From assembly GCA_965153285.1 (NCBI GenBank), contig OZ229129.1: a DNA stretch of 64,000 nucleotides. One strand, 5' to 3'. The translations under genes and the position numbers were made by a program. The notes below the pieces were generated by a model. That model was not told the origin of the DNA, made no database searches, and saw only the letters and a program-made list of their open reading frames with translations. The stretch is from Podarcis tiliguerta. Taxonomy: Eukaryota. Below, in pieces: positions 4,659 to 54,797 of the stretch. Each line of letters begins with the position of its first letter. Positions within the stretch are counted from its first letter, which is position 1.

Positions 4659-5069
4659 TGGCTTTACCTTGCTGTGTATCTTGGTGGATATTTTCCCCTC
4701 TACCCATGTTGCCAGAGTTTCAATATGACCTGTTTATCAGGCATTCCTCCTGGAAACAAGAGGCAGTTAGTCTCTCAGTCTTAGCTGATATTCTGAACTG
4801 ATCAGGAATGAACACACACTGGAGGGGCTGATTCCAGAGCAAAACAAACAAGCTCCACCCAACAGATACCAAGCCCTCTACTATTCAAATTAAGCCCCAG
4901 TCTTTTTCTTACAATCCCCTTCTCACTGGGCCTAATTTGAATTAGTTCAGTTTAATTTTGCATGTAAATTCTCAAAACTTTCTTATTTGAACATTCAACA
5001 ATTTCTGTACAATCTTGTTTGTTCTCAGTACACAGAATTGTATCATCTACCTTGCTTTATACCTTTGTA

Positions 5070-5268
5070 GGAGATGCAGGTGGCGCTGTGGTCTAAACCC
5101 CTGGGCCTTTGGGGCTTGCTGATCAGAAGGTCGGCAGTTCAAATCCCCATGACGGGGTGAGCTCCCGTTGCTCTGTCTCAGCTCCTGCCAATCTAGCAGT
5201 TCAAAAGCACGCCAGTGCAAGCAGATAAATAGGTACTGCTGTGGTGGGAAGGTAAATGGTGTTTCTGG
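5070..5268 (+). mobile_element. Sauria-SINE-like element, 3'-truncated, inside the Copia element
   Basis: ggtggcgctgtggtctaaacc...gatcagaaggtcggcagttcaaatcccc...ggggtgagctcccgttg...agataaataggtac resembles the Sauria SINE head; A/B boxes are visible. Confidence 0.8.
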
Positions 5269-5272
5269 GCCA

Positions 5273-5800
5273 TATTTCATATCAAGTTTATCTTTAGTCT
5301 CTAGTGCATGCATCAAGGAACTGTAACTTTCCAGCAAACTTGACAGAATTAAAATCACTTCGTCCACTTCTTCAAATTTCCTGCCTATAATATTTAAATA
5401 ATCCATCAACTCTGTCACTTGACTTAGATGCTTTTCTAAATCTCAATTTTCTTTCCATTTTAAACAGCTTTCTTCATAAATATAAGTCTCTCACTCAGAG
5501 CATTTCTCTCATACAACTCTTTCAGACTTTGCCACAACTCTTTGGCAGTCTTAAAATCTCTTATGTGTCACTGTCACTGTCATTCACATACGTTGAAATT
5601 TCTGCTGTTGCCTTTCTGTCCTGCTTTTCTCACTTTACTTTTTCTGCCTCTTCTGCTGCTGCAGATTTTTCAATTGTTTCCCACAAATCTTTTTTCAGCA
5701 GCTCATTCTCCATTCAAAATTTCCATAAAGGATAGTTACTTGAAGTGAGAACAGGCACAGCAGGTTCTAGGGCTTTCACAGCTTATATACACGTGGCCAT
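5273..5800 (-). pseudogene. Copia-type gag remnant (UBN2/Retrotran_gag-like) with stops and frameshifts
   Basis: From ATG at 5798-5800: ...VLTSSNYPLWKF*MENELLKKDLWETIE...ELWQSLKELYE...ELMDYLNIIGRKFEEVDEVILILSSLLESYSSLMHALE. The NY..W...M...L...DLW and ILSSL.ESY motifs are typical of copia gag. Confidence 0.8.
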
Positions 5801-6528
5801 AATTTTTTCGTCTTCTCTTTGCCAAACTGGGCCTGTAACCCAATTGTTGTGTAGGTGCGGGGGGATGATTAACAAATTCAGTCCTCCTGGCAAACTGGGA
5901 ATATCTGCTCACTCAGCCAACTTTAGGATATTCCACCATTCATCACCACGGGTTTGTCTCTTTGAGAAAAATAAGTGGGTCATGTAAATGTAAACTAAGC
6001 TTTACTAATAAAGAAAACTGTAACAAAATAACATAAGGAGAGAAACTAAATACCGTATTTTTTGCTCTATAGGATGCACCCGACCATAGGACACACCTTG
6101 TTTTAGAGGGGGAGAACAAGGGAAAAAAATTCTCCCCCTCTCTGCTCAGCGCCCCTTCAGCAAAGCGGCAGGAGAAACGGAGCCCCTTCCATTTCTCCTG
6201 CCGCTTCGCTGAAGGGGTGCTGCACAGAGAGGGGGAGATATTTTTTTTCTTGTTCTCCCCCTCTAAAACAAGGTGCATTCTGTGCGTTCAAGGTGCGTTC
6301 ACCCAAAGCCTCCGGAGCGCAGTGGGAGTTCCTGCCGCACTCTGGAGGCTTCAGGCGGCTACCTTGGAAGCCTGGAGAGCGAGAGGAGTCGCTGCTCACT
6401 GACCCCTCTCACTCTCCAGGCTTCAGTGAAGGCAACCCGAAGCCTCAGGAGCACGGTGGGAGTTCCCGCTGGGCTCCGGAGGTTTCAGGTTCCTTTTGAC
6501 CTGCTCTTTGGGGCTGGCGGAGGTTTTG

Positions 6529-6948
6529 ACAAAGAACAGAGGTTTTGACAAATGGACTACCAAAAACGCGTGAGGCAAACGGTGGAAGTCTTTTAAAAAT
6601 ATTTTAATTAAGATAGATAAGGATATGACGAAAATACATGACTGAATATAAATATAGATTGGAAATGGCTGTGTATAGTGGAATACTTATCTAATTTTAA
6701 AATTCTCATTCTTGATCTTATTTCTTCCTTTTCTTTATCTTCTTCTTGTTCTTTTCTTTTATATTTTACCTTTCATTTCTTGTCTTTATTGTGAATATTG
6801 TTTTGTAGAGGTGTAAATAATTGTAAATATCAGAAGAGGTAAAATGTTTTCTAATTTTCTATTGGTTACATGTATTTTCCTTTTTTCCTATATTTGTATT
6901 TTTTTCTAATTTGTACTCAATAAAATTAATAATAAATAAATAAATAAA
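6529..6948 (+). mobile_element. 5'-truncated L1/Tx1-clade LINE 3' end with A-rich tail
   Basis: Short ORF end KRWKSFKNILIKIDKDMTKIHD* resembles an L1 ORF2 C-terminus, followed by a T-rich 3' UTR, AATAAA at 6919-6924 and an (AAAT)n tail. Confidence 0.6.
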
Positions 6949-7212
6949 GCTCATCTCCTCGTCCCACTTGGCAGCGTCAGGCAACTTCATGTTTTGTCAC
7001 ATGAAATCAAGGAACATGGAGGCCTGCAGTAACCGGCCCAGCCTCTGGAAGTGCCGTGTATGGTAAGAGAGACTCCACAGCTGCTTTGATCCCTTCGTAT
7101 TGCGAGAGGCTCTCTGGCGTCTCATGCTTGAGGAGGGTTTCCACCACTGCCTGAGCCTCGAGGTAGTTCCGCGAGTTTGTGTTCCACGTGATGGAAAACT
7201 TCAACACAGCCT
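6949..7212 (-). pseudogene. TBL3: TBL3 (UTP13) C-terminal gene fragment, disrupted
   Basis: AVLKFSITWNTNSRNYLEAQAVVETLLKHETPESLSQYEGIKAAVESLLPYT, frameshift at 7053/7054, then HFQRLGRLLQASMFLDFM*QNMKLP (TGA 6997-6999). Matches the recalled Utp13 domain of human TBL3 (..TWNTNSRH..EAQAVL..LLPYTERHFQRLSR.LQAA.FLDFLWHNMKLP). Confidence 0.9.
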
Positions 7213-7744
7213 CTGGAAGAAGGGGTTTGGGGAAGACACGTCAGGAAGGAGTGCAAGTTGCAGGCAGCGTGGCCACCTTGAACCAACACACCTCTCTTGC
7301 GAAGCGTGGCCAGATCTGGGCACACATCTGACCTGCGCCTTTCTTGAATGCAGGGAAGCAGATCCAACACCCCTCCACACCTAGTAGAAACAATTAATGA
7401 TGGGAGGGGTGACTGGGTTTATTCCAGACTACATGGCTTGCAGGAATGGGTTTTATAATATTTATAAAAGTACAACAACAACAACAATATGCATTATAAT
7501 CTTTGCTCTAGTATTACAGAGCTGGTGGAGCTAATTTGAGGCTGTGTACACACCATACATTAAAAGCATTATCGCTCTCCCCTGTAAGAATCCTGGGAAC
7601 TGTAGATTACCCTTCTACCGCATAGCTACAATTTGTAGCACCCTTTACAAACTGCAATTCCCAGGATTCTTTGGGAGAAATGTGCTTTTAATGCCTGTTT
7701 TTCCTGCAGCAGGCATGCTCAGCTACCCCTCTGGAAGCTCAATC

Positions 7745-8003
7745 CCACAGAAAGCTGTGACAACCACCAACTTGGATGGTTTTATGCAGGAAAGGCTATC
7801 AATGGCCACTAGGCACGATGGCTATGCTCTACCTCCACAGTCAGTGGCAGTAACCTTTGTGAATAGTAGTTGCTGGAAGATGCAGGAAGGGAATACAGAA
7901 TGCTCTTGTTTCCACAGGCCTCTGCTTGGCCACTGTGAGAACAGGGTGCTGGACTAGACAGGCCAATGTGGCCTCATCCAGCAGGCACTTCTTATGTCCT
8001 TAC
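7745..8003 (+). mobile_element. CR1 LINE 3' end (within the cargo)
   Basis: acttggatgg...ggccactgtgagaacagggtgctggactaga...tccagcaggcacttcttatgtcctta, the common squamate CR1 tail. Confidence 0.7.
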
Positions 8004-10324
8004 GTGGTTCAAGGGTTGAGATTGTGAGAAGGCATCTTCCAAAGCAATCCCACCCTGCAAATAGCTTTGGAGCCTTCTTGCCTCTAGCCTAGCCCTCACC
8101 CCTTTTCCTGTTCTTGCTGGAGTCTTCTTTTGCTTGCCACGCCTGCGGGCTCTCTTCCAGCCAACGGTGCCAATGACGGATCTTAAAAACTTGGGGTCGG
8201 TGAGATTCGGCAATCGCAGCACCTTGCGCCTGCTGGACCTCCTGAGCGGAGCGGGTTGTGTCTTGCTCCTCTTGAAGTAGGGTGAAATGTGAGGAGTGTT
8301 GCAAGCCGGTGTAGAGGCAGAAGGTCTGGCCGAGATGGTAGAGCACGGCTTCTCTGTCAGGGGCTTCTTGCTAACCCAGTGGAATACCTTCGGAGGTTTT
8401 GCGTTGCTATCACCGATGCCAAGGAGCCTGCATTCGCTCCATAGGACGCACACACATTTCCCCTTAATTTTGGAGGGGGAAAAGTGTGTCCTATAGAACA
8501 AAAAATACGGTACATCCCGAGGGAAGTCTGAGGCAAGAAGCAAGAAAAGGCAGTTGGTCTCTCTTAACTGACATTCTTAACTGAACATAACGGAACCCAC
8601 TGAAGGGAGGGGCTGATTCCGGAGCAAAACACAGAAGCCCCACCTACCAGATACCAAACATTCTACTATTCAAATTAGGCCCCAGTGTTTTCCTTACAAA
8701 GACACACTACAGTTTCCAGTGCATTTTCCTGTCACTATCCTTATTAGGAAAAGCCTGATGGTTCTTGCTTTATGTGTGCTTCAAAAGGCCAGGTTTTCTT
8801 TTATATAGAAAGGCATGAAAAATCCATATTTAAATTGTGCACACTTCCTGCTTATGTCCACATTTTCTACTTCTCCTAAAATATGCATTTTGGGGGCATA
8901 GTTTTCCCCTATTATATGCGTTTTGATGTGCATTGCTTAGGAACCAAAACTGCACCAGCAAGTTCAAAGTGTGTGTCTGACTGATAGCTGCGTTCTGACA
9001 TGCATATAATTCTAAACGCAAAGAATTATGTCAGTTTGCTTTAAATTTGCACTTAAAGAACCAAAGTTTCAGGACCAGGGGACGTGGTGGGACCAGTGAT
9101 GGGAGAATTCCTCCTCTTCAATTCCACTCCATTCACGCATTGTACACAGGTGTGTAGTTGTCCAAGGTTGAAGACCCATTACTATTTTTGCAGAAGGGTC
9201 ACAGCAGGGCCCCTGTCACCAGAGTCCCCTCCGCAATTGTTTCTATTAATTTTCCAAATTATTACGAATCAAACAAAATTACTTTAACACGATTTCTTAA
9301 AATCAGGTTTCCCGCTCCTGTTTCAAACATACGCCCATCATTTCCTCCCTTAGCTGCATCATTTCTTATTTAGTGTCCAGTTGTCATCCTTTACTTGCAT
9401 CCTGTCACCAGAGTCGTACAGCTGCCTAACTAACATGAACAGGGTTTTTTGTTTTGCCATTGAGAAGTCTTCTCCCTCTTTGTGCTGACTGGAGCCAGCC
9501 AGAATGAAAGGAAGTGAGTGAGCCAATGAGGATTGGTTGCAAGGGTGAGTTTGGAGAAAGCACATAGGAAGAACAGAGAGGAGTTGCTCCATATGCTTCA
9601 CAGCTGAACATTTAGGAGCACTGAAAACACAAGGTGCTTCAGTTTCATGAGAACAATGTGCAAGTTCTGTTAACATACAATGGAACTTAAAGGAAAACAA
9701 CTTAATCTACTCTGAAATAAGATACTGGAGCACTCCAAATCATTTCCCCCCATGTATATCCACAGAAAATAGTAGATCGAGCTGAAAGGCAACACATGGA
9801 GAACTGCACTGATTGTTGTAATGCCCCTTTAATTATTATTAAAGCACATGGATAAGACTATTCCGTAATCTTAGAATGGTGTGTTGCTGTGGCAGTGTGT
9901 GTAGGTATGAGTGGCGCATCGCTGTGACTGTCATGATGGAACCCTGCACTTCTGAATTTGTCACAACACTAGTAATTGTACTTTGGGTTCCTTGGGTTCC
10001 TTTGTACCAGCATTATCATGTCTATTGAGTTTTAGGCTATTAAAGTGTGATCTGTCTTGAATCCACAGGATTATATACTGATTGCATATTGAAATCCAGG
10101 TGAGCTGCTGCCAATCAGTGTAGACAATACTAAGCTAGATAGGCCAAAGATCTTAGTGTAAGGCAACTTTCTATACTCCTAGATTTAAATGAGAGAAAAT
10201 GGGTAGCAAATAAAACACAGATGGCAAGATATCTAGATTTCCACAAAGCGGTGAGTAGATGAGGCATTGATCAACTGCAGTGTAAAATTCAGGATTACAA
10301 ACAAAGATATGCTTTCATAAAAAT

Positions 10325-10330: not shown

Positions 10331-12238
10331 TTCCTTTTTTTTAATAATTCAATGTGCTGGCAGTATAATTAATCCCTCTATGAGAGACATGAATGTACCA
10401 GTTCAACCAATATTATATTATACAGAGACAATTGCATTTAAAAACAACAAACAACATTGAAAATGTTTGTACAGAAAGTATTACTTTTTAGAAAGAAAGA
10501 AGAGAAATGTAAACAGAAGTGGATAATCTGTGCAACACATTGGTAATGCAAAAGAAACAAGCAGGATACTTCCCCCCCCCCCTTTACATAGAAAGAAAAA
10601 GAAAAGTAGCTTCAGAACTATACAACATTTCAGCAATTGCCAGACATGTTAACAGTTATTGTTTTTTATCTGTACGAAAACATCTCAACTTATACTTAAA
10701 ACTTTACAGGGATAACATGCTTGTTCTGAACAAAGACACATTGTGGAATTTCAGAGATTATGGAGCAGGTGGTTTCTACACATAAAAGGCGTCTATTTTG
10801 TATGAAATGCATGCTAGAGGAGGAGAGACCACTCTCTCCTCCCTGCTCTGCCCAAGTCAATTATCATTTAATTTCAGTGGGTAGATAGCTAAATGTGGAA
10901 AATAAATATGACTTTGGTTAGCTGGAGGACCAAGAGGTCTTCGTGTTGCTATTTCTCTATCCAGTAACTAGAACACAGCATACACAATTAATCCAGATGA
11001 CAACTGGAGTTACGTTTACATATATATATATGTGCACACAAAATGAATATTCAAGCCTGTTTTCTGTTTGGCACTTTAGAAGCACAGGTGCAAAAACCTC
11101 ACTATTAGCCAGACAAATCCCAACACCTCTAGAGGAAAGACAGAACAGCTCCAAAGAGGAAAGTTCTCTTTTGTCTGCCTTAACTGCTTTTCCTGTGACT
11201 TTATATATAAAACATACAATGGGATTCCTACCTTGCTGTGATTCAGACTGAACTGATCTCTCCCTCCAAGCCTGCCAAAGGTGAAACACATCCCACACTG
11301 CATAAATTGGCTTTTTGTTGATTTCAACTTGAGCTAGGTCTGATGAATGTGGTATAGTCCTCTGATCTGATTATACCTCCTCAGAACTCCTGAGAAGGTT
11401 GGAAGCTAATGGGAAGAAAATGTGTAGGACATGATTTTGTGTGGGAATGCATTCAAATGAGCCACCCCAAAGTGAAATATGAGATCTTAAGATGTTCCTT
11501 CAAGTACATATGAATGTGTGTGTGTAACTCCAATCCTTGCCTTCATGCATTCAAGGATTCTGGGTGTGGATGACCAGGGAGGGAGGTCAGCAGGTACAAC
11601 CTTGATATCCCTCTCCACAGTCCCATTGGCACCTGAACAGGACTACGCTGGCAAGAGAGGAATATACCATGTCAATAACAGTATTGGCTCTAAGTTCTCT
11701 ACATAAACAGGTCCTCATATACTAAAACCAAATTTCATTGCTACAGTTTGCCTTGCTACATGTAAATAAACAGATGGCAGAGGGATGGGCTTTAATTTAA
11801 CTTTCTTTCATGCACATCTTTTGTACGGTGAATTTCACCCTGCCCCAACCATGGTATTCAGTCACTTAATGAATCCCACTTTCTCACCTGCAGTCTGAGT
11901 GGCACAGTCTAGTAACCATTTCACCATAGGATGAACAAATTTGCTGAGAGAGCTTCTAGCTAAATAGGAATGAGAAATGCCAGAAATCAGAACCTGCTTC
12001 TTCAGTTATTTAAAGCCTTCTAAAAACTGGTGGGCTTTGAAATTACACCTCCCACTTCACATGGAGGATGGAACAAGCTTGTTTTTTTCCTGCTCTGGAG
12101 GGTAGGACTCAAAGCAATGGATTCAAGTTACAAGAAAAGAGATCTTGACTAAGCATCAGGAAGAACTTTTTGACTGGAAGAGCTGTCATAGAATCATAGA
12201 GTTGTGGAGCTGGAAGGGACCACGAGGATCATCTAGTC

Positions 12239-12374
12239 CAGGCATAGGCAAACTCGGCCTTCCAGATGTTTTGGGACTACAACTCCCATCATCCCTAGCT
12301 AACAGGACCAGTGGTCAGGGATGGTGGGAGCTGTAGTCCCAAAACATCTGCAGGGCCGAGTTTGCCTATGCCTG
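12239..12374. mobile_element. Palindromic hAT-type MITE (136 bp) inserted in a CR1 tail, in the AFF2 3' UTR
   Basis: TIRs CAGGCATAGGCAAACTCGGCC / GGCCGAGTTTGCCTATGCCTG; imperfect TSD ATCTAGTC / TTCTAGTC. Confidence 0.85.
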
Positions 12375-14125: not shown

Positions 14126-14705
14126 TGTTTTTGAAGGAAAGAGCTTTTAGGCTTTTGCCAGTGCTGTGATGTTTTTATTACTTGTATTTTAATATATTTA
14201 TTTTTAATTATTGCTTTAATTCTATTAGAGGTTGATTCCTTTGTAACAATGATTTTTAAACATTTTTAAAATGCTCTTTGTATTTACCTGTGTTTTTAAT
14301 CAGCAACATGGTCTATAGGAATACGTTCTGCACACTAATGAAGTTATGGACATTCACCTTCAGTAAGGTAAAGCTGGCAAAAAAGGGAAACTGTGCAGTC
14401 TTGAGGCCATTTTTCTCCCTTGCATGGCATATATTGGCAAAGCTTCAGAGCAAAGGCTATATACCGCAACTGATTTACACTTTCACAATTGACAGAAACT
14501 GCCATTCATTCGAAGAAAAAGAAGGCATGAGGGTGAATTCCACTTGGTTTGATGGGCCAATAATTCAAAGTAGTACCCTCCATCAATATTCCCAATGAAT
14601 TTTGCTGTAAGGTGAATGAGAAGTTTTATTTGAGTCAGGGTAGGTTTCAAGGTTGCCACCTTCCCCCCTTCTTTTTAAATGATCCCTGCTCTTGTGCTTT
14701 TAAAG

Positions 14706-14841
14706 CAGGCATAGGCAAACTCCAGCCCTCCAGGTGTTTGGGACTACAATTCCCATCATCCCTGACCACTGGTCCTGTTAGCTAGGGATGATGGGAATTG
14801 TAGTCCCAAACAGCTGGAGGGCTGGAGTTTTCCTATGCCTG
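14706..14841. mobile_element. Palindromic hAT-type MITE (136 bp), same family, opposite orientation
   Basis: Perfect 8-bp TSD TTTTAAAG (14698-14705, 14842-14849); TIRs CAGGCATAGG / CCTATGCCTG. Confidence 0.9.
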
Positions 14842-15792
14842 TTTTAAAGCATCCTAACTTTCAGAAATGTAGGAAATTAAGCACCTCATCCAGCGCAGAA
14901 AGAAAAAGCCCTGGTTTGGATGTAACACTATGGCATAGTGTTGCATGCAGAAGCCTTGAGCTCTTGTGTTCTCCTTCCTCTCTTCAAATGTGGCTACGAG
15001 GAAGGAATTGGCCACTTTCACTTCTATTTCAATTAACAGTGAATGCTAGTCCTACTTGGAGCAGACCTGCTGACATTAAGGGGTCCAACTAATTTAAGCA
15101 CGCTTAAGTAGAACCTTAGTGATAAACTATGATTAGTTAAAAATGGAAGACAAAGCTTCTAATCTCCTCCTAGTCATGCTGGGGGAAGAGAAATGAAGGA
15201 AGAATGCAGATGTTTGAGATTTGTGCTAATAATGCTTAATAATATTTTACTGTTGCATCCGAAGGTAGCCAAAGGCTTAGTTCGGACATCACACGAAACC
15301 ATATATTGTGGTAACCAAAATGATGGCTCAAATTTCCAAGTCATGCAAATCATAATTTAGAGTTCCTGTTTTCCTTCTGCACAACACTCCCATATCTAGT
15401 GTAGCAGATCATGCAGATGGAGCAACCGTTGTAACTATGGTTAGACAATTCAGACATCATACCAGACCATGGTTTGTAATCACCACAGATTGCAAACCTA
15501 CTTCAAACCATGTTTCTTGTGGCAAGTTCTAAAGATCTGAGGGCAGACTGCAGGGTGGCTTTCTAGGTCTAAGAAACACTCTCTGCAGCCCATGCTGGGC
15601 CTCAAACTGAGGGTAGGGTTCACACATTCATGCATATCACTTGATGACAGCAACATCAAGTGACCACTTTTTTGTGAATGGTCACCATGGATATTAATAG
15701 CACCAGTAGGAATTTAATATGACCTAAGATGCCAAATTCTTATGACATAAGTTCATACAGCTGCCTGTATGATTCTTCAAACATCTCCTAAA

Positions 15793-23172: not shown

Positions 23173-24645
23173 CTGGGAAAAGGGAAAGAGAATGAGGTTC
23201 CACCTTACGGGAAATTTTCTAGATGTTGACTTGGGCAGAGTTTGCTGAAACGCTTTGTGTTAGGTAGTGCAAGCTGGTCTTTTGAGACAAATGAGGCACC
23301 TCTGTCCCACCAGTCTGCCTTCAGCCACTTGAAACTTGCCTGCCTTCTTCCTTGAAAAGGGAGTGGCCTTGGCTATCAGCTTCCCCCTCCTTAGTTTTCA
23401 GTGCTGCCCCTTGTAGAACTCAGCAGGAAGGAGAATGTGGACATAATTACTGGCTCTGGCACTACCTACTGTTAGGCTCCCACCCTTTTGTCCCCACCAG
23501 TCTCAGGAGAGAACCAGCCACCACTGGAATTAAGAAGTGGAGGAGAATCAAACATTCACCAGAGAGGTATATTGGATCACACCTGTAAGAAGCTTTATGA
23601 AAGGGGCTGGAGGTGAATGGATGCGCCCAAGCCCTTTGAAGGAAACATATGCCAAGGCCCTCGCAGGATGCCAGCCAGCCAGCTGAAGAAGGCAGTTCAC
23701 AACACAGATCAAGGAATATGCGCCACCAGTGATGGTCTGTACAATCTCTGTGACCAAATATGAATTTGCCTTGTTGCCATGGGAACCTCAGGGAAGAAGA
23801 TTTCTTCCTCCCCCGCCCCAATGAAAGCAGTGGGGGCTTCCCCACTTTTTGCTTAGCACTCTAGCATGAAACCAACAGCAAAGGAAAGGCAGAATGCAAA
23901 CAAGCTTTTAGCTGCAGATTCTTCCTGTTGTAAGAAATGGAAGCTGAACTCTTTCAACTCAGCTGGGCTATGGTCTTAACACCCATTCCCTCCCCTGCTT
24001 GTTTGTAACACAGAATGCTGTGCACCTCACCAGACTACAATTTCAAGCATTCATTGGCTGACATAAGACTAAATTTGTCCATCTAGCCCAGCTATTGCAA
24101 GGACAGGGAACTTTTGACCCTTCTTATTTTGTGGGACTCCAAGTCCCATCAGCCTCAGCTGACATGGCTGATGGTCAGGGATGATGGGTGTTGTAGTCAG
24201 ACAACTTCTGGAGGGCTGAAAGATTTCAGGCAAAGTTCCAAGGAGAGAATTTTGGTAACTGGAGATGACTGAAAACAACAACATACATACATTTATTTTA
24301 AAAAAACCCTATTCATGCTATGAACACTATTTTTCAGATTGCTCAGTTAAGAAAGAATCAAGTTAATCAAGCCATACAACTCCCAAGATTCCCAACATAA
24401 ACTCATCATGAGCTGTAAGACTGTGGCTAATTTGCATATCTTATTAACATCATTACAATGTTTGACAATCTGCTGGTTCCCCCGCCCGCAACACCACTGT
24501 TAGTATTTGTCTATTCCTATTAAAAAAATACTGCTTCTCCCCAAAGCCACAGCCTACCTCTCAAAGCTGCTGTATAATCTGATAGTATTATTACTATTAT
24601 ATTTTTAGAAATTTCCTAGCAATGCACTAACATTATTGTATAATG

Positions 24646-31636: not shown

Positions 31637-34600
31637 CTTTAGTGGAGAGAGATTTAAGGGGGGGAGAGGGGGGAGGAGAAAAAGGAGAAGAGAGCTGAAA
31701 TATTGAGTGTCAGCAAGGCTGCTTTGAGAAAAATGAGTGAGTCAAGCTATTGGTCCACCTAGACCTGGAGTGTTCTAATCCCCTTAGGAATTCAAAGGCA
31801 GAGATCTTTCCAGGTCTAGGCTCCTCAGGTGCATTCAAACTTAGGGAGACTAGCATGTGGGCAATGCACTCTCAAACAAAACAACTGTGTGGAGTGCATC
31901 ACCCGTGACACTGAACTGCAGGAGGGGGCCCCTTGCTGCTCAACCGTTTCCTGTCCTGGCTTGCGAATAATAAAGTTGGGCAATTTCCTTTCCTTTCCTT
32001 CTCCCCCTCCCCTCCTTCCCTGATGAAAGTGTTCCTCACCACCCGCAACATTCCGCACACTTAAGCCTTCTGAAAATCAAATCATCATAGAAAAACCATT
32101 GTTCTGAGCCTTAATACAATTTCACAGGTACTTGTGTTAGAGTAAGTAATAGAGTTCAGTGTTGCGTAAGGAGGTTTTAAGGTATCCGGGCGGTCTCATT
32201 TACAAGGGAGTAATGGAGTGCAGGAGAAATGCACTGCTTTTACCGCACTGGATCACTGCCGCCCCTGTCGTCATCACCATTATGTGCTTCATATATAAAG
32301 GACCCTTTTAGTTCAGCGCTTTCTTTCTTCATTTTCTTCCTCCCCTGCCCCTTCTTGTGCTTTACGACAGCTTCTGTCATACTTGGTGGCTCAGGACAAA
32401 TTAAGGTTTCGTATCCTTTGAGGATGTGCACGCTTAAAAAGGAAGGGATTTAAAGATACAATTAGTCTAAACAGCCTTGGCAGCCGTATTTCTGGCATCC
32501 TGAGTCACTGTGATGTGTTGCTCATTCTCACAAATCAATGTCATCTGCGTGCATCTGAGCCTTTGAATAGCTATAATTAGCAAAATGGATTAAAAAAAGA
32601 ACCCCCCAAAGGTCTGCTGGGAGGGAACACAGCAGGAAGAGACAAGGGACATCACTTGCTTACACTGTATCTTCCAGCTCTGACAAATCCCCCCCCCCCC
32701 GCTCTCTCTCTCCAGGGTAAAATTGTATGTGAGGGCAACAGACCCATGGCTTTAAAATGTTATGCACACCAATCATATGAACATAAGGAGAGCTGCTGGA
32801 TCAGGCCAATGGCCCATCTAGTCCAGCATCTTGTTCTCATGGTGGCGATCTAGATGCCTATGTGAAGCCTGAGCACAACAGTACTCTCCCCACTTGTGAT
32901 TCCCACCACCTGGCATCCAGAGTGCCACTGCCTTTAATAGTGCAGGTGGGACACAGCCTATGTGGCTCCCTCCCACAGTGGAGAAAAAGGGCAGGTTTAC
33001 GTATCCAAAAAGGTGCGCAAGTGGTGCTTGATGCTTCTCTGCCCACAGATTACCTCCCCACACCTGTTTCTCTGCACACTTCCAACAGCTAAGATAGCAC
33101 CTGGCATTGGAGCTCAGATAATGACATGCAACATGAAGCGAGGGGGGAAGCTGTGAACAGGGGTGAGGTTCAGCCCATCCAATGGATAGGTCTGGTTTAG
33201 TTGTGTTTTAGTATGTGATCATTCTGCTGCCCTGAAACCTCCTTTGTGATCTCCCCTTTCTGTTTAAACCAGAGCTGCACGCAAATACACATTCTGAAAT
33301 ATTTACAAGGCATATTATTTCCCCAAAGATAACAGCTTCTTTTCAAATCCGGTGCATTTCTGCTATGTAAACAAATACTCATTCATAATGCAAAGCATGT
33401 ACTATTTCCTCACTGATGCTTTCCTGACATTGAATTCTTTCATGTTATAAATATACGTTTCTAAGGGGAAATCCCACAACTGCTAGGGAAAGTTGGTTCA
33501 TATGCTGCGTGCACAATGCTTGGTCCTGCACATTTGGGTTGACACCTGACTTTTTAATGGCTTGCATGTGCAGATGAATGGCTGTTGCACACACTGCTCC
33601 ACAGATATCACCTCAAACACAATATATTTCGGTGGAATCAATTCAGATGCCAGCTAGCTTGTCAGGAAGCAACTCTGCTCCCTTGGTCCTTCACATGCAT
33701 TGCAGGGGATTCACAAAATCAAAGAATTGTAGAGTTGGCTTATACTGCACAACCCTTGTGGTCCCTTTCCAACTCTACAACTCTTTGATTCTATGGTCAA
33801 ACCATGGTTTGCTCATTGCAAACCATTGCAAACCACGTGAGGGGCTCATGTGCCTCCTCCTCTTCTACTGGTTCAAGGTAATCATGGCTGATATTCCCTT
33901 ATAGGGCAAGATATAGTGGCTGCAAACCATAGTTCGCCTCTACATCAGCACTGTAGTTCAAAACCAGTCCAAGGTCCTTGATGCAGAATCTACTTGAAAT
34001 TCAACAGGTAAAATAAAATAATTTCAATCCAGAGAACGGTTATGATCCTCCCTCCTTTGATTTTGGTGCCTATATAAGGCCCAATCTGTAGGGTTGGATT
34101 GCTCAATCTATTTCTGGTTTGTGTCAATTTCAAAACTGTTCATCCATCAGTCCATGTTTGCATTAGTATGCATTTTTTAAAATCCATTTGAAAATTTTTA
34201 AATAAACATTTTACTACAAAATGCATATTTAAATAGCAGTTTGTCTCGGTGCACGAATTTCTAAACTTTTACACACTTATCTTTTACACATTTTGATATG
34301 GCTTTAGAGCTGAAGGCTGGATTGCATAATCTGGCGAAGTGTGAAATCCGAAGGGTAACTGCACATTGGTGTGGGAGGTGCAAATCAGATCTGTTCACAT
34401 AAAAAAGCGGACTGAACAAAGATACTCCTCCATCCTTATCTATCCTCTGAGGCCTTTGGATCTGGCCAAACTTTGCCAACCTGGAGCTTTACGGCTACTG
34501 TTAGTTACTTTTATATAGATAAAGATCCATAGCTATTTTAAAGTTACACTGAGCTGCCTTAAGCATTATGGAAAAGCAGGCTAGCCATATTTCCCATAAA

Positions 34601-54514: not shown

Positions 54515-54797
54515 CCCCACAACAACCCAGTGAAGTAGTGTTAGGCTGAGAGGCATTGACTGGCCCCTCAAGGTAAGTTTCACGGCTGAGTGGAGATTTA
54601 AACCTAGGTCTCCCAGGTCCAAATCTGACACACTAACCCAGGCTTCCTCAAACTCGACCCTCCAGATGTTTTTGGCCTACAATTCCCATGATCCCTAGTT
54701 AGCAGGACCAGTAGTCAGGGATGATGGGAATTGTACTATCAAAACATCTGGAGGGCTGAGTTTCAGGAACCCTTCTCTAACCACTACACCACACTGG
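54515..54797 (-). mobile_element. Squam3-like SINE interrupted by a palindromic hAT MITE (~54639-54775)
   Basis: Minus-strand head ccagtgtggtgtagtggttaga...; the MITE lies between the near-identical 8-mers CACTAACC and CTCTAACC. Confidence 0.7.

Follow-up and report, generated by a model that had tools for sequence, protein, structure and literature searches.

The window analysed here, a 64,000-nucleotide (nt) stretch of the wall lizard Podarcis tiliguerta (contig OZ229129.1 of assembly GCA_965153285.1) that contained no N, carried a transposon insertion at positions 6053 to 8510. Two arms of a high-copy miniature transposon bounded the insertion, and between them lay 1,862 bp of foreign DNA (positions 6529 to 8390) that included a fragment of TBL3. 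Read depth, which was in the hundreds or thousands over the element, dropped to between 10 and 68 reads in this foreign interior, referred to below as the cargo. An initial annotation had described the insertion as a Pack-TIR-like element, that is, a DNA transposon with terminal inverted repeats (TIRs) that had captured pieces of host genes.

Read depths were taken from the raw Hi-C reads of run X23, which corresponded to ~1.3x coverage if a genome of ~1.5 Gb was assumed; the unique bin at positions 5700 to 5806 had a depth of 1.4 and served as the baseline. These reads and the contigs of runs X15, X2, and X18 were aligned to positions 5700 to 8900 at 80% likeness. The features of the element were as follows:

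6051-6052: left TA target-site duplication, read from the sequence
6053-6074, plus strand: left TIR, 22 nt, with one mismatch to the right end
6053-6528, plus strand: left arm of the miniature transposon, with a depth of 350 to 1,650 reads and two long hairpins
8391-8510, plus strand: right arm of the miniature transposon, with a depth of ~5,900 and including the right TIR
8489-8510: right TIR, the reverse complement of the left TIR with one mismatch
8511-8512: right TA target-site duplication, read from the sequence; family homology stops at 8512

The TIRs and the TA duplication that the initial annotation placed around 2458 bp were confirmed. The left TIR (CCGTATTTTTTGCTCTATAGGA) matched the inverted right end over 22 nt with one mismatch, the match extended to 29 nt at 90% when the TA was included, and none of 100 shuffles gave any match. 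Copies of the surrounding host repeat found elsewhere ran from position 6053 directly to 8519 (and also from 6053 to 8525) and were unbroken there in each of the four runs; continuity across the TA was read allowing a 5-nt difference between repeat copies. Because the host-repeat copies bridged the site, positions 6053 to 8510 constituted a single insertion. The possibility that the two ends were independent insertions, which the initial annotation had raised against itself, was ruled out by the same exact bridging in four runs.

Both arms belonged to one high-copy family, with roughly 1,000 to 4,500 copies per genome implied by depth. Specifically, the depth of X23 reads was 1,400 to 1,650 at positions 6021 to 6448 and ~205 at 6449 to 6555 on the left, and ~5,900 at 8375 to 8481 and ~1,300 at 8482 to 8588 on the right. 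Homology stopped at 8512 in 2,250 reads, with unrelated sequence beyond, which indicated that the family ends at the TA. Thus, the earlier assignment of element-like sequence to 6053-6528 and 8391-8510 held for both arms, which were high-copy, of the same family, and bounded by TA.

The family appeared in many deletion variants. In the common short form, more than 600 reads linked position 6426 or 6430 straight to 8425, and the standard form was ~460 to 600 bp. The last 86 nt of the element (8425 to 8510) were common to all subfamilies, and 8425 was the inner limit of the right terminal domain in almost all deletion variants. A loose end at 8425 was found in 5,209 reads, which continued inward with a different consensus, indicating that the interior of the largest subfamily was unlike that of this copy. 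The two hairpins of the left arm had arms at 6085-6181/6188-6284 and 6301-6390/6401-6490; as single-stranded DNA, the left arm folded at -166.7 kcal/mol compared to -78.6 kcal/mol for shuffles (z = -17.6).

Open reading frames (ORFs) in the element were only chance-sized. A protein word search with the longest ORF of the left arm (91 amino acids [aa]) found no relatives, no transposase was found within the 64-kb window, and no named Podarcis family of this type was found in the literature. The element had the properties of a Tc1/mariner-type (Stowaway-like) miniature inverted-repeat transposable element (MITE): it was flanked by a TA duplication and was short, non-coding, and high-copy, with TIRs. 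Because neither an autonomous partner nor a transposase was found, the TA was the single basis for placing it in this superfamily.

The foreign interior

The cargo consisted of four parts, which were listed from left to right as follows:

6529-6948, plus strand: AT-rich stretch (guanine-plus-cytosine [GC] content of 25%) with an AATAAA/(AAAT)n-type tail, resembling the 3' end of a long interspersed nuclear element (LINE); depth of 10 to 23
6949-7212, minus strand: TBL3 pseudogene fragment, matching Pfam Utp13 and human TBL3
7213-8053, minus strand: intron-like DNA lying upstream of the TBL3 exon and retaining the acceptor AG (7214-7213) and the pyrimidine tract
8054-8388, minus strand: GC/CpG-richer segment, open on this strand and of the same multi-copy family as the rest of the cargo

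The tail of the AT-rich stretch (6930 to 6948) abutted the TBL3 fragment tail to tail. When the TBL3 exons were searched one at a time, the minus-strand exon from 7212 to 7054, which encodes AVLKF...LLPYT, matched positions 66 to 116 of Pfam Utp13 (PF08625; E value of 2.4e-12) and residues 713 to 765 of human TBL3 (E value of 7.9e-15). The next TBL3 exon was joined to it without an intron at 7054/7053, and the first 5 nt of this exon were missing, which created a frameshift. This second exon read HFQRLGRLLQASMFLDFM from position 7053 and, in the other frame, matched Utp13 positions 113 to 136. In addition, TGA replaced a conserved tryptophan (W) codon in the fragment.

Genomic ORFs of other sauropsids, apparently birds (the one named was from the cuckoo Piaya cayana) read PYT followed by GE.., as expected for read-through into a GT-GAG intron, and a partial bird TBL3 terminated at PYT. 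Because the sauropsid ORFs ran into an intron after PYT, the real TBL3 has an intron at this point that was absent from the fragment. The upstream exon end was used exactly, which pointed to an RNA step in the origin of the fragment. These sequence features mark the TBL3 piece as a half-spliced pseudogene copy that was already dead, rather than a direct copy of the gene.

The intron-like DNA that the initial annotation had noticed next to the TBL3 fragment was borne out by the retained acceptor and pyrimidine tract. High-copy interspersed repeats lay within it at ~7626 to 8053 (depth of 300 to 1,700), with loose ends at 7637, 7912, 7958, and 7965. Positions 7901 to 7997 and 32781 to 32875 were copies, in opposite orientation and 77% identical, of a very abundant short interspersed repeat for which read depth implied at least ~1,300 copies. 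A putative exon picked by eye at 7293 to 7418 was dropped, and its matches in the PDB were repeat-protein noise.

The right-hand segment (8054 to 8388), described initially as a CpG-rich exon-like piece, was indeed richer in GC (0.56) and in CpG, with an observed/expected ratio of 0.50 compared to 0.13 to 0.31 in the intron-like part. The exon-like part of that description fared less well: two minus-strand frames of the segment had no match in Pfam or the PDB, and its reading as a TBL3 exon was dropped.

All parts of the cargo were multi-copy. The depth of X23 reads was 10 to 23 in the AT-rich stretch, 17 to 31 in the TBL3 part, and 50 to 68 at 8054 to 8374, compared to 1.4 in unique sequence. 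Collapsed single contigs from X2, X15, and X18 covered 7028-7203, 7174-7364, 7417-7660, 7472-7687, 7658-7816, and 8219-8388 at depths of 10 to 25 times single copy, with 11 differences in ~1,330 nt. The cargo thus had relatives ~99% identical to the window, with ~10 to 50 near-identical copies in four wall-lizard relatives. At every one of the variable cargo sites listed, the remaining copies agreed together against the window. No second copy of the cargo was found within the 64-kb window.

A protein word search with a 183-aa minus-strand ORF that crossed the right junction matched a family of Podarcis proteins. The family included at least 12 P. lilfordi proteins annotated as 'hypothetical' or 'beta 3' on four chromosomes, several of which had neighbouring accession numbers, as well as two ORFs in assemblies of public reads and a 175-aa P. 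muralis protein named 'transducin beta-like protein 3' (accessions included CAI5788121/22, CAI5788283/84, CAI5793392-468, and CAI5761774 from P. lilfordi and XP_028571338/39 from P. muralis). These Podarcis ORFs, at least 12 in number, were 84 to 94% identical to the 8054-8388 segment. Several P. lilfordi copies of the TBL3-bearing repeat adjoined one another on the same chromosome.

Three of the models covered the exon end (P0004, P0005, and P0014), and they read ...LLPYTALPEAGP, with the same frameshift as the window. This shared frameshift indicated that the three descend from one dead TBL3 fragment; together with the one missing TBL3 intron, it suggested that the family probably began from partly spliced RNA.

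The right edge of the cargo was where the relatives left the window. Family members started with MSNPSKR.MI.VFHWV or at the later MI.VF, and the window instead read ...DSNAKPPKVFHWV. In a tblastn comparison, the homology of the family to the window stopped at 8387/8388 in all of the ORFs (at least 12). Likewise, an X18 contig (record 15; 234 nt, depth of 1,292) matched 8219 to 8388 and then continued for 64 letters that were unlike the window. The relatives therefore shared no junction with the right arm of the element, and the alignments indicated that a longer repeat, already in existence, is present in the window in truncated form.

These findings required a revision of the initial annotation, which had viewed the interior as a mosaic assembled by the element from host genes. 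This view was not upheld, since the AT-rich, TBL3, and right-hand parts were all multi-copy and ~99% identical elsewhere. Instead, the comparisons indicated that the cargo is one stretch of an existing repeat and was not collected piecewise from genes. The donor repeat had already joined the LINE-like tail, the dead TBL3 fragment, and other DNA, so that the "gene capture" would be second-hand.

A cargo found in many copies might also be explained by a mobile Pack-type element, in which one capture was followed by transposition with the cargo and the 10 to 50 copies are members with a different right joint. We considered this unlikely. A mobile element could account for a cargo that is young, multi-copy, and spread over several chromosomes in four species, and for the intact TIRs and TA. 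However, the collapsed contig and the ORFs (at least 12) diverged at 8388 and did not continue as the right arm, and a 15-letter insertion at this position was absent from the best-supported insertions and deletions, among which weaker ones were listed. The P. lilfordi copies were locally clustered, which resembled local or tandem duplication more than scatter by a TA-targeting element, and copy number was uneven along the cargo (10 to 31 versus 50 to 68 reads). A possible likeness at 10 of 12 letters between the donor beyond 8388 and the joint region of the element, which is described below, would be a further point for the mobile element. As judged from the relatives, most of which lack the right junction, there was no sign of the element moving with its cargo.

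Joints of the cargo and the proposed capture event

The borders of the cargo had the following features:

6518-6528, plus strand: first copy of an 11-nt direct repeat, CGGAGGTTTTG, the longest word shared by the two junction zones
8389-8390: probable junction filler, TT, found in neither the family relatives nor the 11-nt repeat
8391-8401, plus strand: second copy of the 11-nt direct repeat, CGGAGGTTTTG, an exact match

Of 5,000 shuffles, 2 had a shared word of 11 nt or longer, as did 9 of 5,000 random genomic pairs with the same geometry (a chance frequency of ~0.0004 to 0.002). A 14-nt word, GAGGTTTTGACAAA, occurred twice at the left edge of the cargo, at 6520 and 6540 (20 nt apart).

In our view, the best explanation, with a probability somewhat better than even, is one gap-filling event by template switching in a miniature transposon rich in hairpins. 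An old copia-like repeat would have received a single insertion of a non-autonomous, TA-targeting MITE. The element would have broken internally, at the present or an earlier site, possibly on excision or where a replication fork stalled at the hairpins. Repair synthesis, with the element being copied from either side, would then have jumped to an unlinked multi-copy repeat and run along ~1.86 kb of it before the filler was rejoined to the element, and the two extra letters would have been left at the right joint. Because the same 11 nt of the element would lie on both sides of the join, the 11-mer would flank the filler. The repair mechanism is a deduction from these joints, and the resulting composite probably exists at one locus only.

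The hairpin-rich left arm (z = -17.6) fits the fragile-site gap-filling route described for animal Pack-TIRs by Tan et al. (2021, Nat Commun 12:4280; PMC8277862), who identified 370 Pack-TIRs across 100 animal genomes and concluded that single-copy Pack-TIRs mostly owe their origin to gap filling that is independent of transposition and leaves microhomology at its breakpoints. With regard to the initial annotation, which proposed a Pack-TIR or gap-repair capture, a TA/TIR element with ~1.86 kb of foreign DNA and a gene fragment was present and the 11-nt duplication was as gap repair predicts, but the cargo came from an amplified repeat and not from host genes.

Several points weigh against a single gap-filling event. 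None of the listed contigs spanned an internal junction, so the junctions were without independent confirmation. Beyond 8388, what could be read of the relatives amounted to 11 residues and 64 contig letters that did not align. The single 11-mer expected in standard members was not directly seen, and the joints that would show it fell outside the listed ones. Lastly, the donor residues NPSK, which lie 15 nt past the break, could be encoded by DNA that matches 10 of 12 letters of the joint; this likeness may reflect microhomology, chance, or relatives that also enter element-like DNA.

The lack of a bridging contig, together with the fact that both parts are repeats, is also what an assembly artefact would produce if a transposon copy had been wrongly joined to a copy of the TBL3-bearing repeat. 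We regarded this as very improbable. The arms paired as TIRs, the TA duplication beside them lay where host-repeat copies were continuous, the exact 11-nt duplication at the cargo borders is a biological signature, and an overlap of 11 nt would presumably fall far short of what misleads a long-read assembler. In addition, X15 contigs matched both unique flanks with 0 differences and at single-copy depth (a flank contig identical to the window had a depth of 44.6). This agreement makes X15 probably a run of the same species as the window.

The 11-nt repeat could instead be the target-site duplication of an RNA-mediated, LINE-driven insertion of the cargo into the element. LINE target-site duplications usually cover a range that spans 11 nt, and the terminal TTTTG of the repeat comes close to a LINE nicking site. 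The cargo also has a LINE-like tail, an RNA-derived, intron-less TBL3 junction, and two untemplated letters at one joint. Although a repeat of target-site-duplication size (7 to 20 bp) was present at the cargo borders, an A-rich or other tail was found at neither copy, and the sole tail lay in the middle of the insert. The orientation of the cargo posed difficulties on both strands: in the case of a plus-strand insertion, the 3' side was truncated relative to the family, unlike in LINE copies, and in the case of a minus-strand insertion, copy number was expected to be highest at the left end but was highest at the right. Thus, a LINE-driven insertion seemed a poor candidate, although less so than an artefact.

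A bolder version of the capture was also considered, in which the donor is an undescribed, wall-lizard-specific composite repeat made of a partly spliced TBL3 transcript and a LINE 3' end joined tail to tail, with ~10 to 50 copies annotated as 'TBL3', and in which it was picked up by a TA-type miniature transposon able to move it. Taken as a whole, this version has a low probability.

Host repeat around the insertion

The insertion lay within an older repeat, which had the following parts:

5807-6050, minus strand: host repeat left of the insertion, possibly a copia-type long terminal repeat (LTR); depth of 20 to 25, with diverged contigs
8513-8802, minus strand: host repeat right of the insertion, of which 8542-8699 repeats 4755-4914

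The host repeat was present in 15 to 20 copies that were 10 to 15% diverged from the window. A copia-type gag match (PF14223) was found on the minus strand at 5284 to 5418, with an E value of 2.6e-4 that was below Pfam's cut-off. The direct repeat at 4755-4914 and 8542-8699 was 80 to 87% identical. A distance of 3.8 kb separated its copies, or 1.3 kb once the insertion is discounted, and they may be the paired LTRs of a copia-like element that has undergone heavy deletion. Given the weak gag match and the direct repeat, the insertion may plausibly be nested in a copia LTR, as initially proposed.

The flank contig identical to the window had single-copy depth and flank copies elsewhere were 10 to 15% diverged, which indicated that the young cargo copies lie outside copies of this repeat. 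Co-amplification of cargo and host repeat was therefore ruled out, given that the cargo copies were ~99% identical.

Inside the copia-like remnant and beside the gag match, positions 5058 to 5250 resembled the head of a tRNA-derived short interspersed nuclear element (it ended in a box like ...GGTTCAAATCCCC). Elsewhere in the window, a palindromic miniature repeat family had four copies (12233-12374, 14699-14848, 24093-24223, and 54633-54773) in both orientations, with arms of ~57 to 65 nt that were 82 to 95% complementary and a 20-nt loop.

Comparison with known elements

The element resembled Stowaway-like (Tc1/mariner-type) MITEs in its TA duplication, its short TIRs, and its lack of coding capacity, as well as in its strong hairpins, thousands of copies, and many deletion variants. 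It differed in that its termini (CCGTATTTTTTG...) were assigned to no named family, and its superfamily was deduced from the TA and nothing else.

The donor family had features of partly processed retrocopies and of LINE-associated chimeric repeats. The upstream exon end was exact and the upstream intron was kept, a LINE-like tail adjoined the fragment, and there were many dispersed copies. Unlike in partly processed retrocopies, the tail and the TBL3 fragment were joined tail to tail, and no poly(A) was seen. In the P. muralis and P. lilfordi annotations, this TBL3 pseudogene repeat appears as small TBL3-like genes.

Abortive gap repair with filler DNA is known in P, Ac/Ds, and Mu elements, in which the fillers are usually tens of bases long and come from nearby. 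The case described here was similar in that a cut-and-paste element was internally rearranged, with filler of foreign origin and joints marked by short direct repeats, but the filler was 1.86 kb long and came from an unlinked repeat. Plant Pack-MULEs are likewise TIR-bounded elements with host gene fragments. They have 9- to 11-bp target duplications, long Mutator TIRs, and gene-derived cargo, and they are often present in many mobile copies, whereas the insertion described here involved a TA target and a miniature element with no sign of movement with the cargo.

The closest comparison was with the animal Pack-TIRs of Tan et al. (PMC8277862). A Pack-TIR was defined there as having flanks of at least 10 bp of the termini of the same element, a non-element interior of 100 to 5,000 bp, and one unambiguous parental locus (a unique best match with at least 90% identity), and retro-duplicates were discarded. 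The insertion had 22-nt TIRs with both arms in one family and a non-element interior of 1,862 bp with TBL3 exons. In contrast to a single parental copy, its cargo had ~10 to 50 near-identical relatives, including the P. lilfordi ORFs (at least 12). With regard to retro-duplication, the TBL3 piece was without one intron and kept the upstream intron, and the RNA step seems to belong to the origin of the donor family rather than to this capture.

Like animal Pack-TIRs, the insertion had foreign DNA between the ends of one TIR element, a target-site duplication, a single-copy appearance, borders with signs of template switching, and a breakage-prone element. It differed in that the parent was a repeat with ~10 to 50 copies, a TBL3 intron was missing, and the cargo was partly repeat DNA. 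The event is a further example of this known kind. It provides a reptile example of a cut-and-paste element that picked up foreign DNA, with an exact 11-nt duplication at the joints and a hairpin-rich element, and it carries a warning that a gene fragment borne by a transposon may derive from an amplified pseudogene repeat and not from the gene itself.

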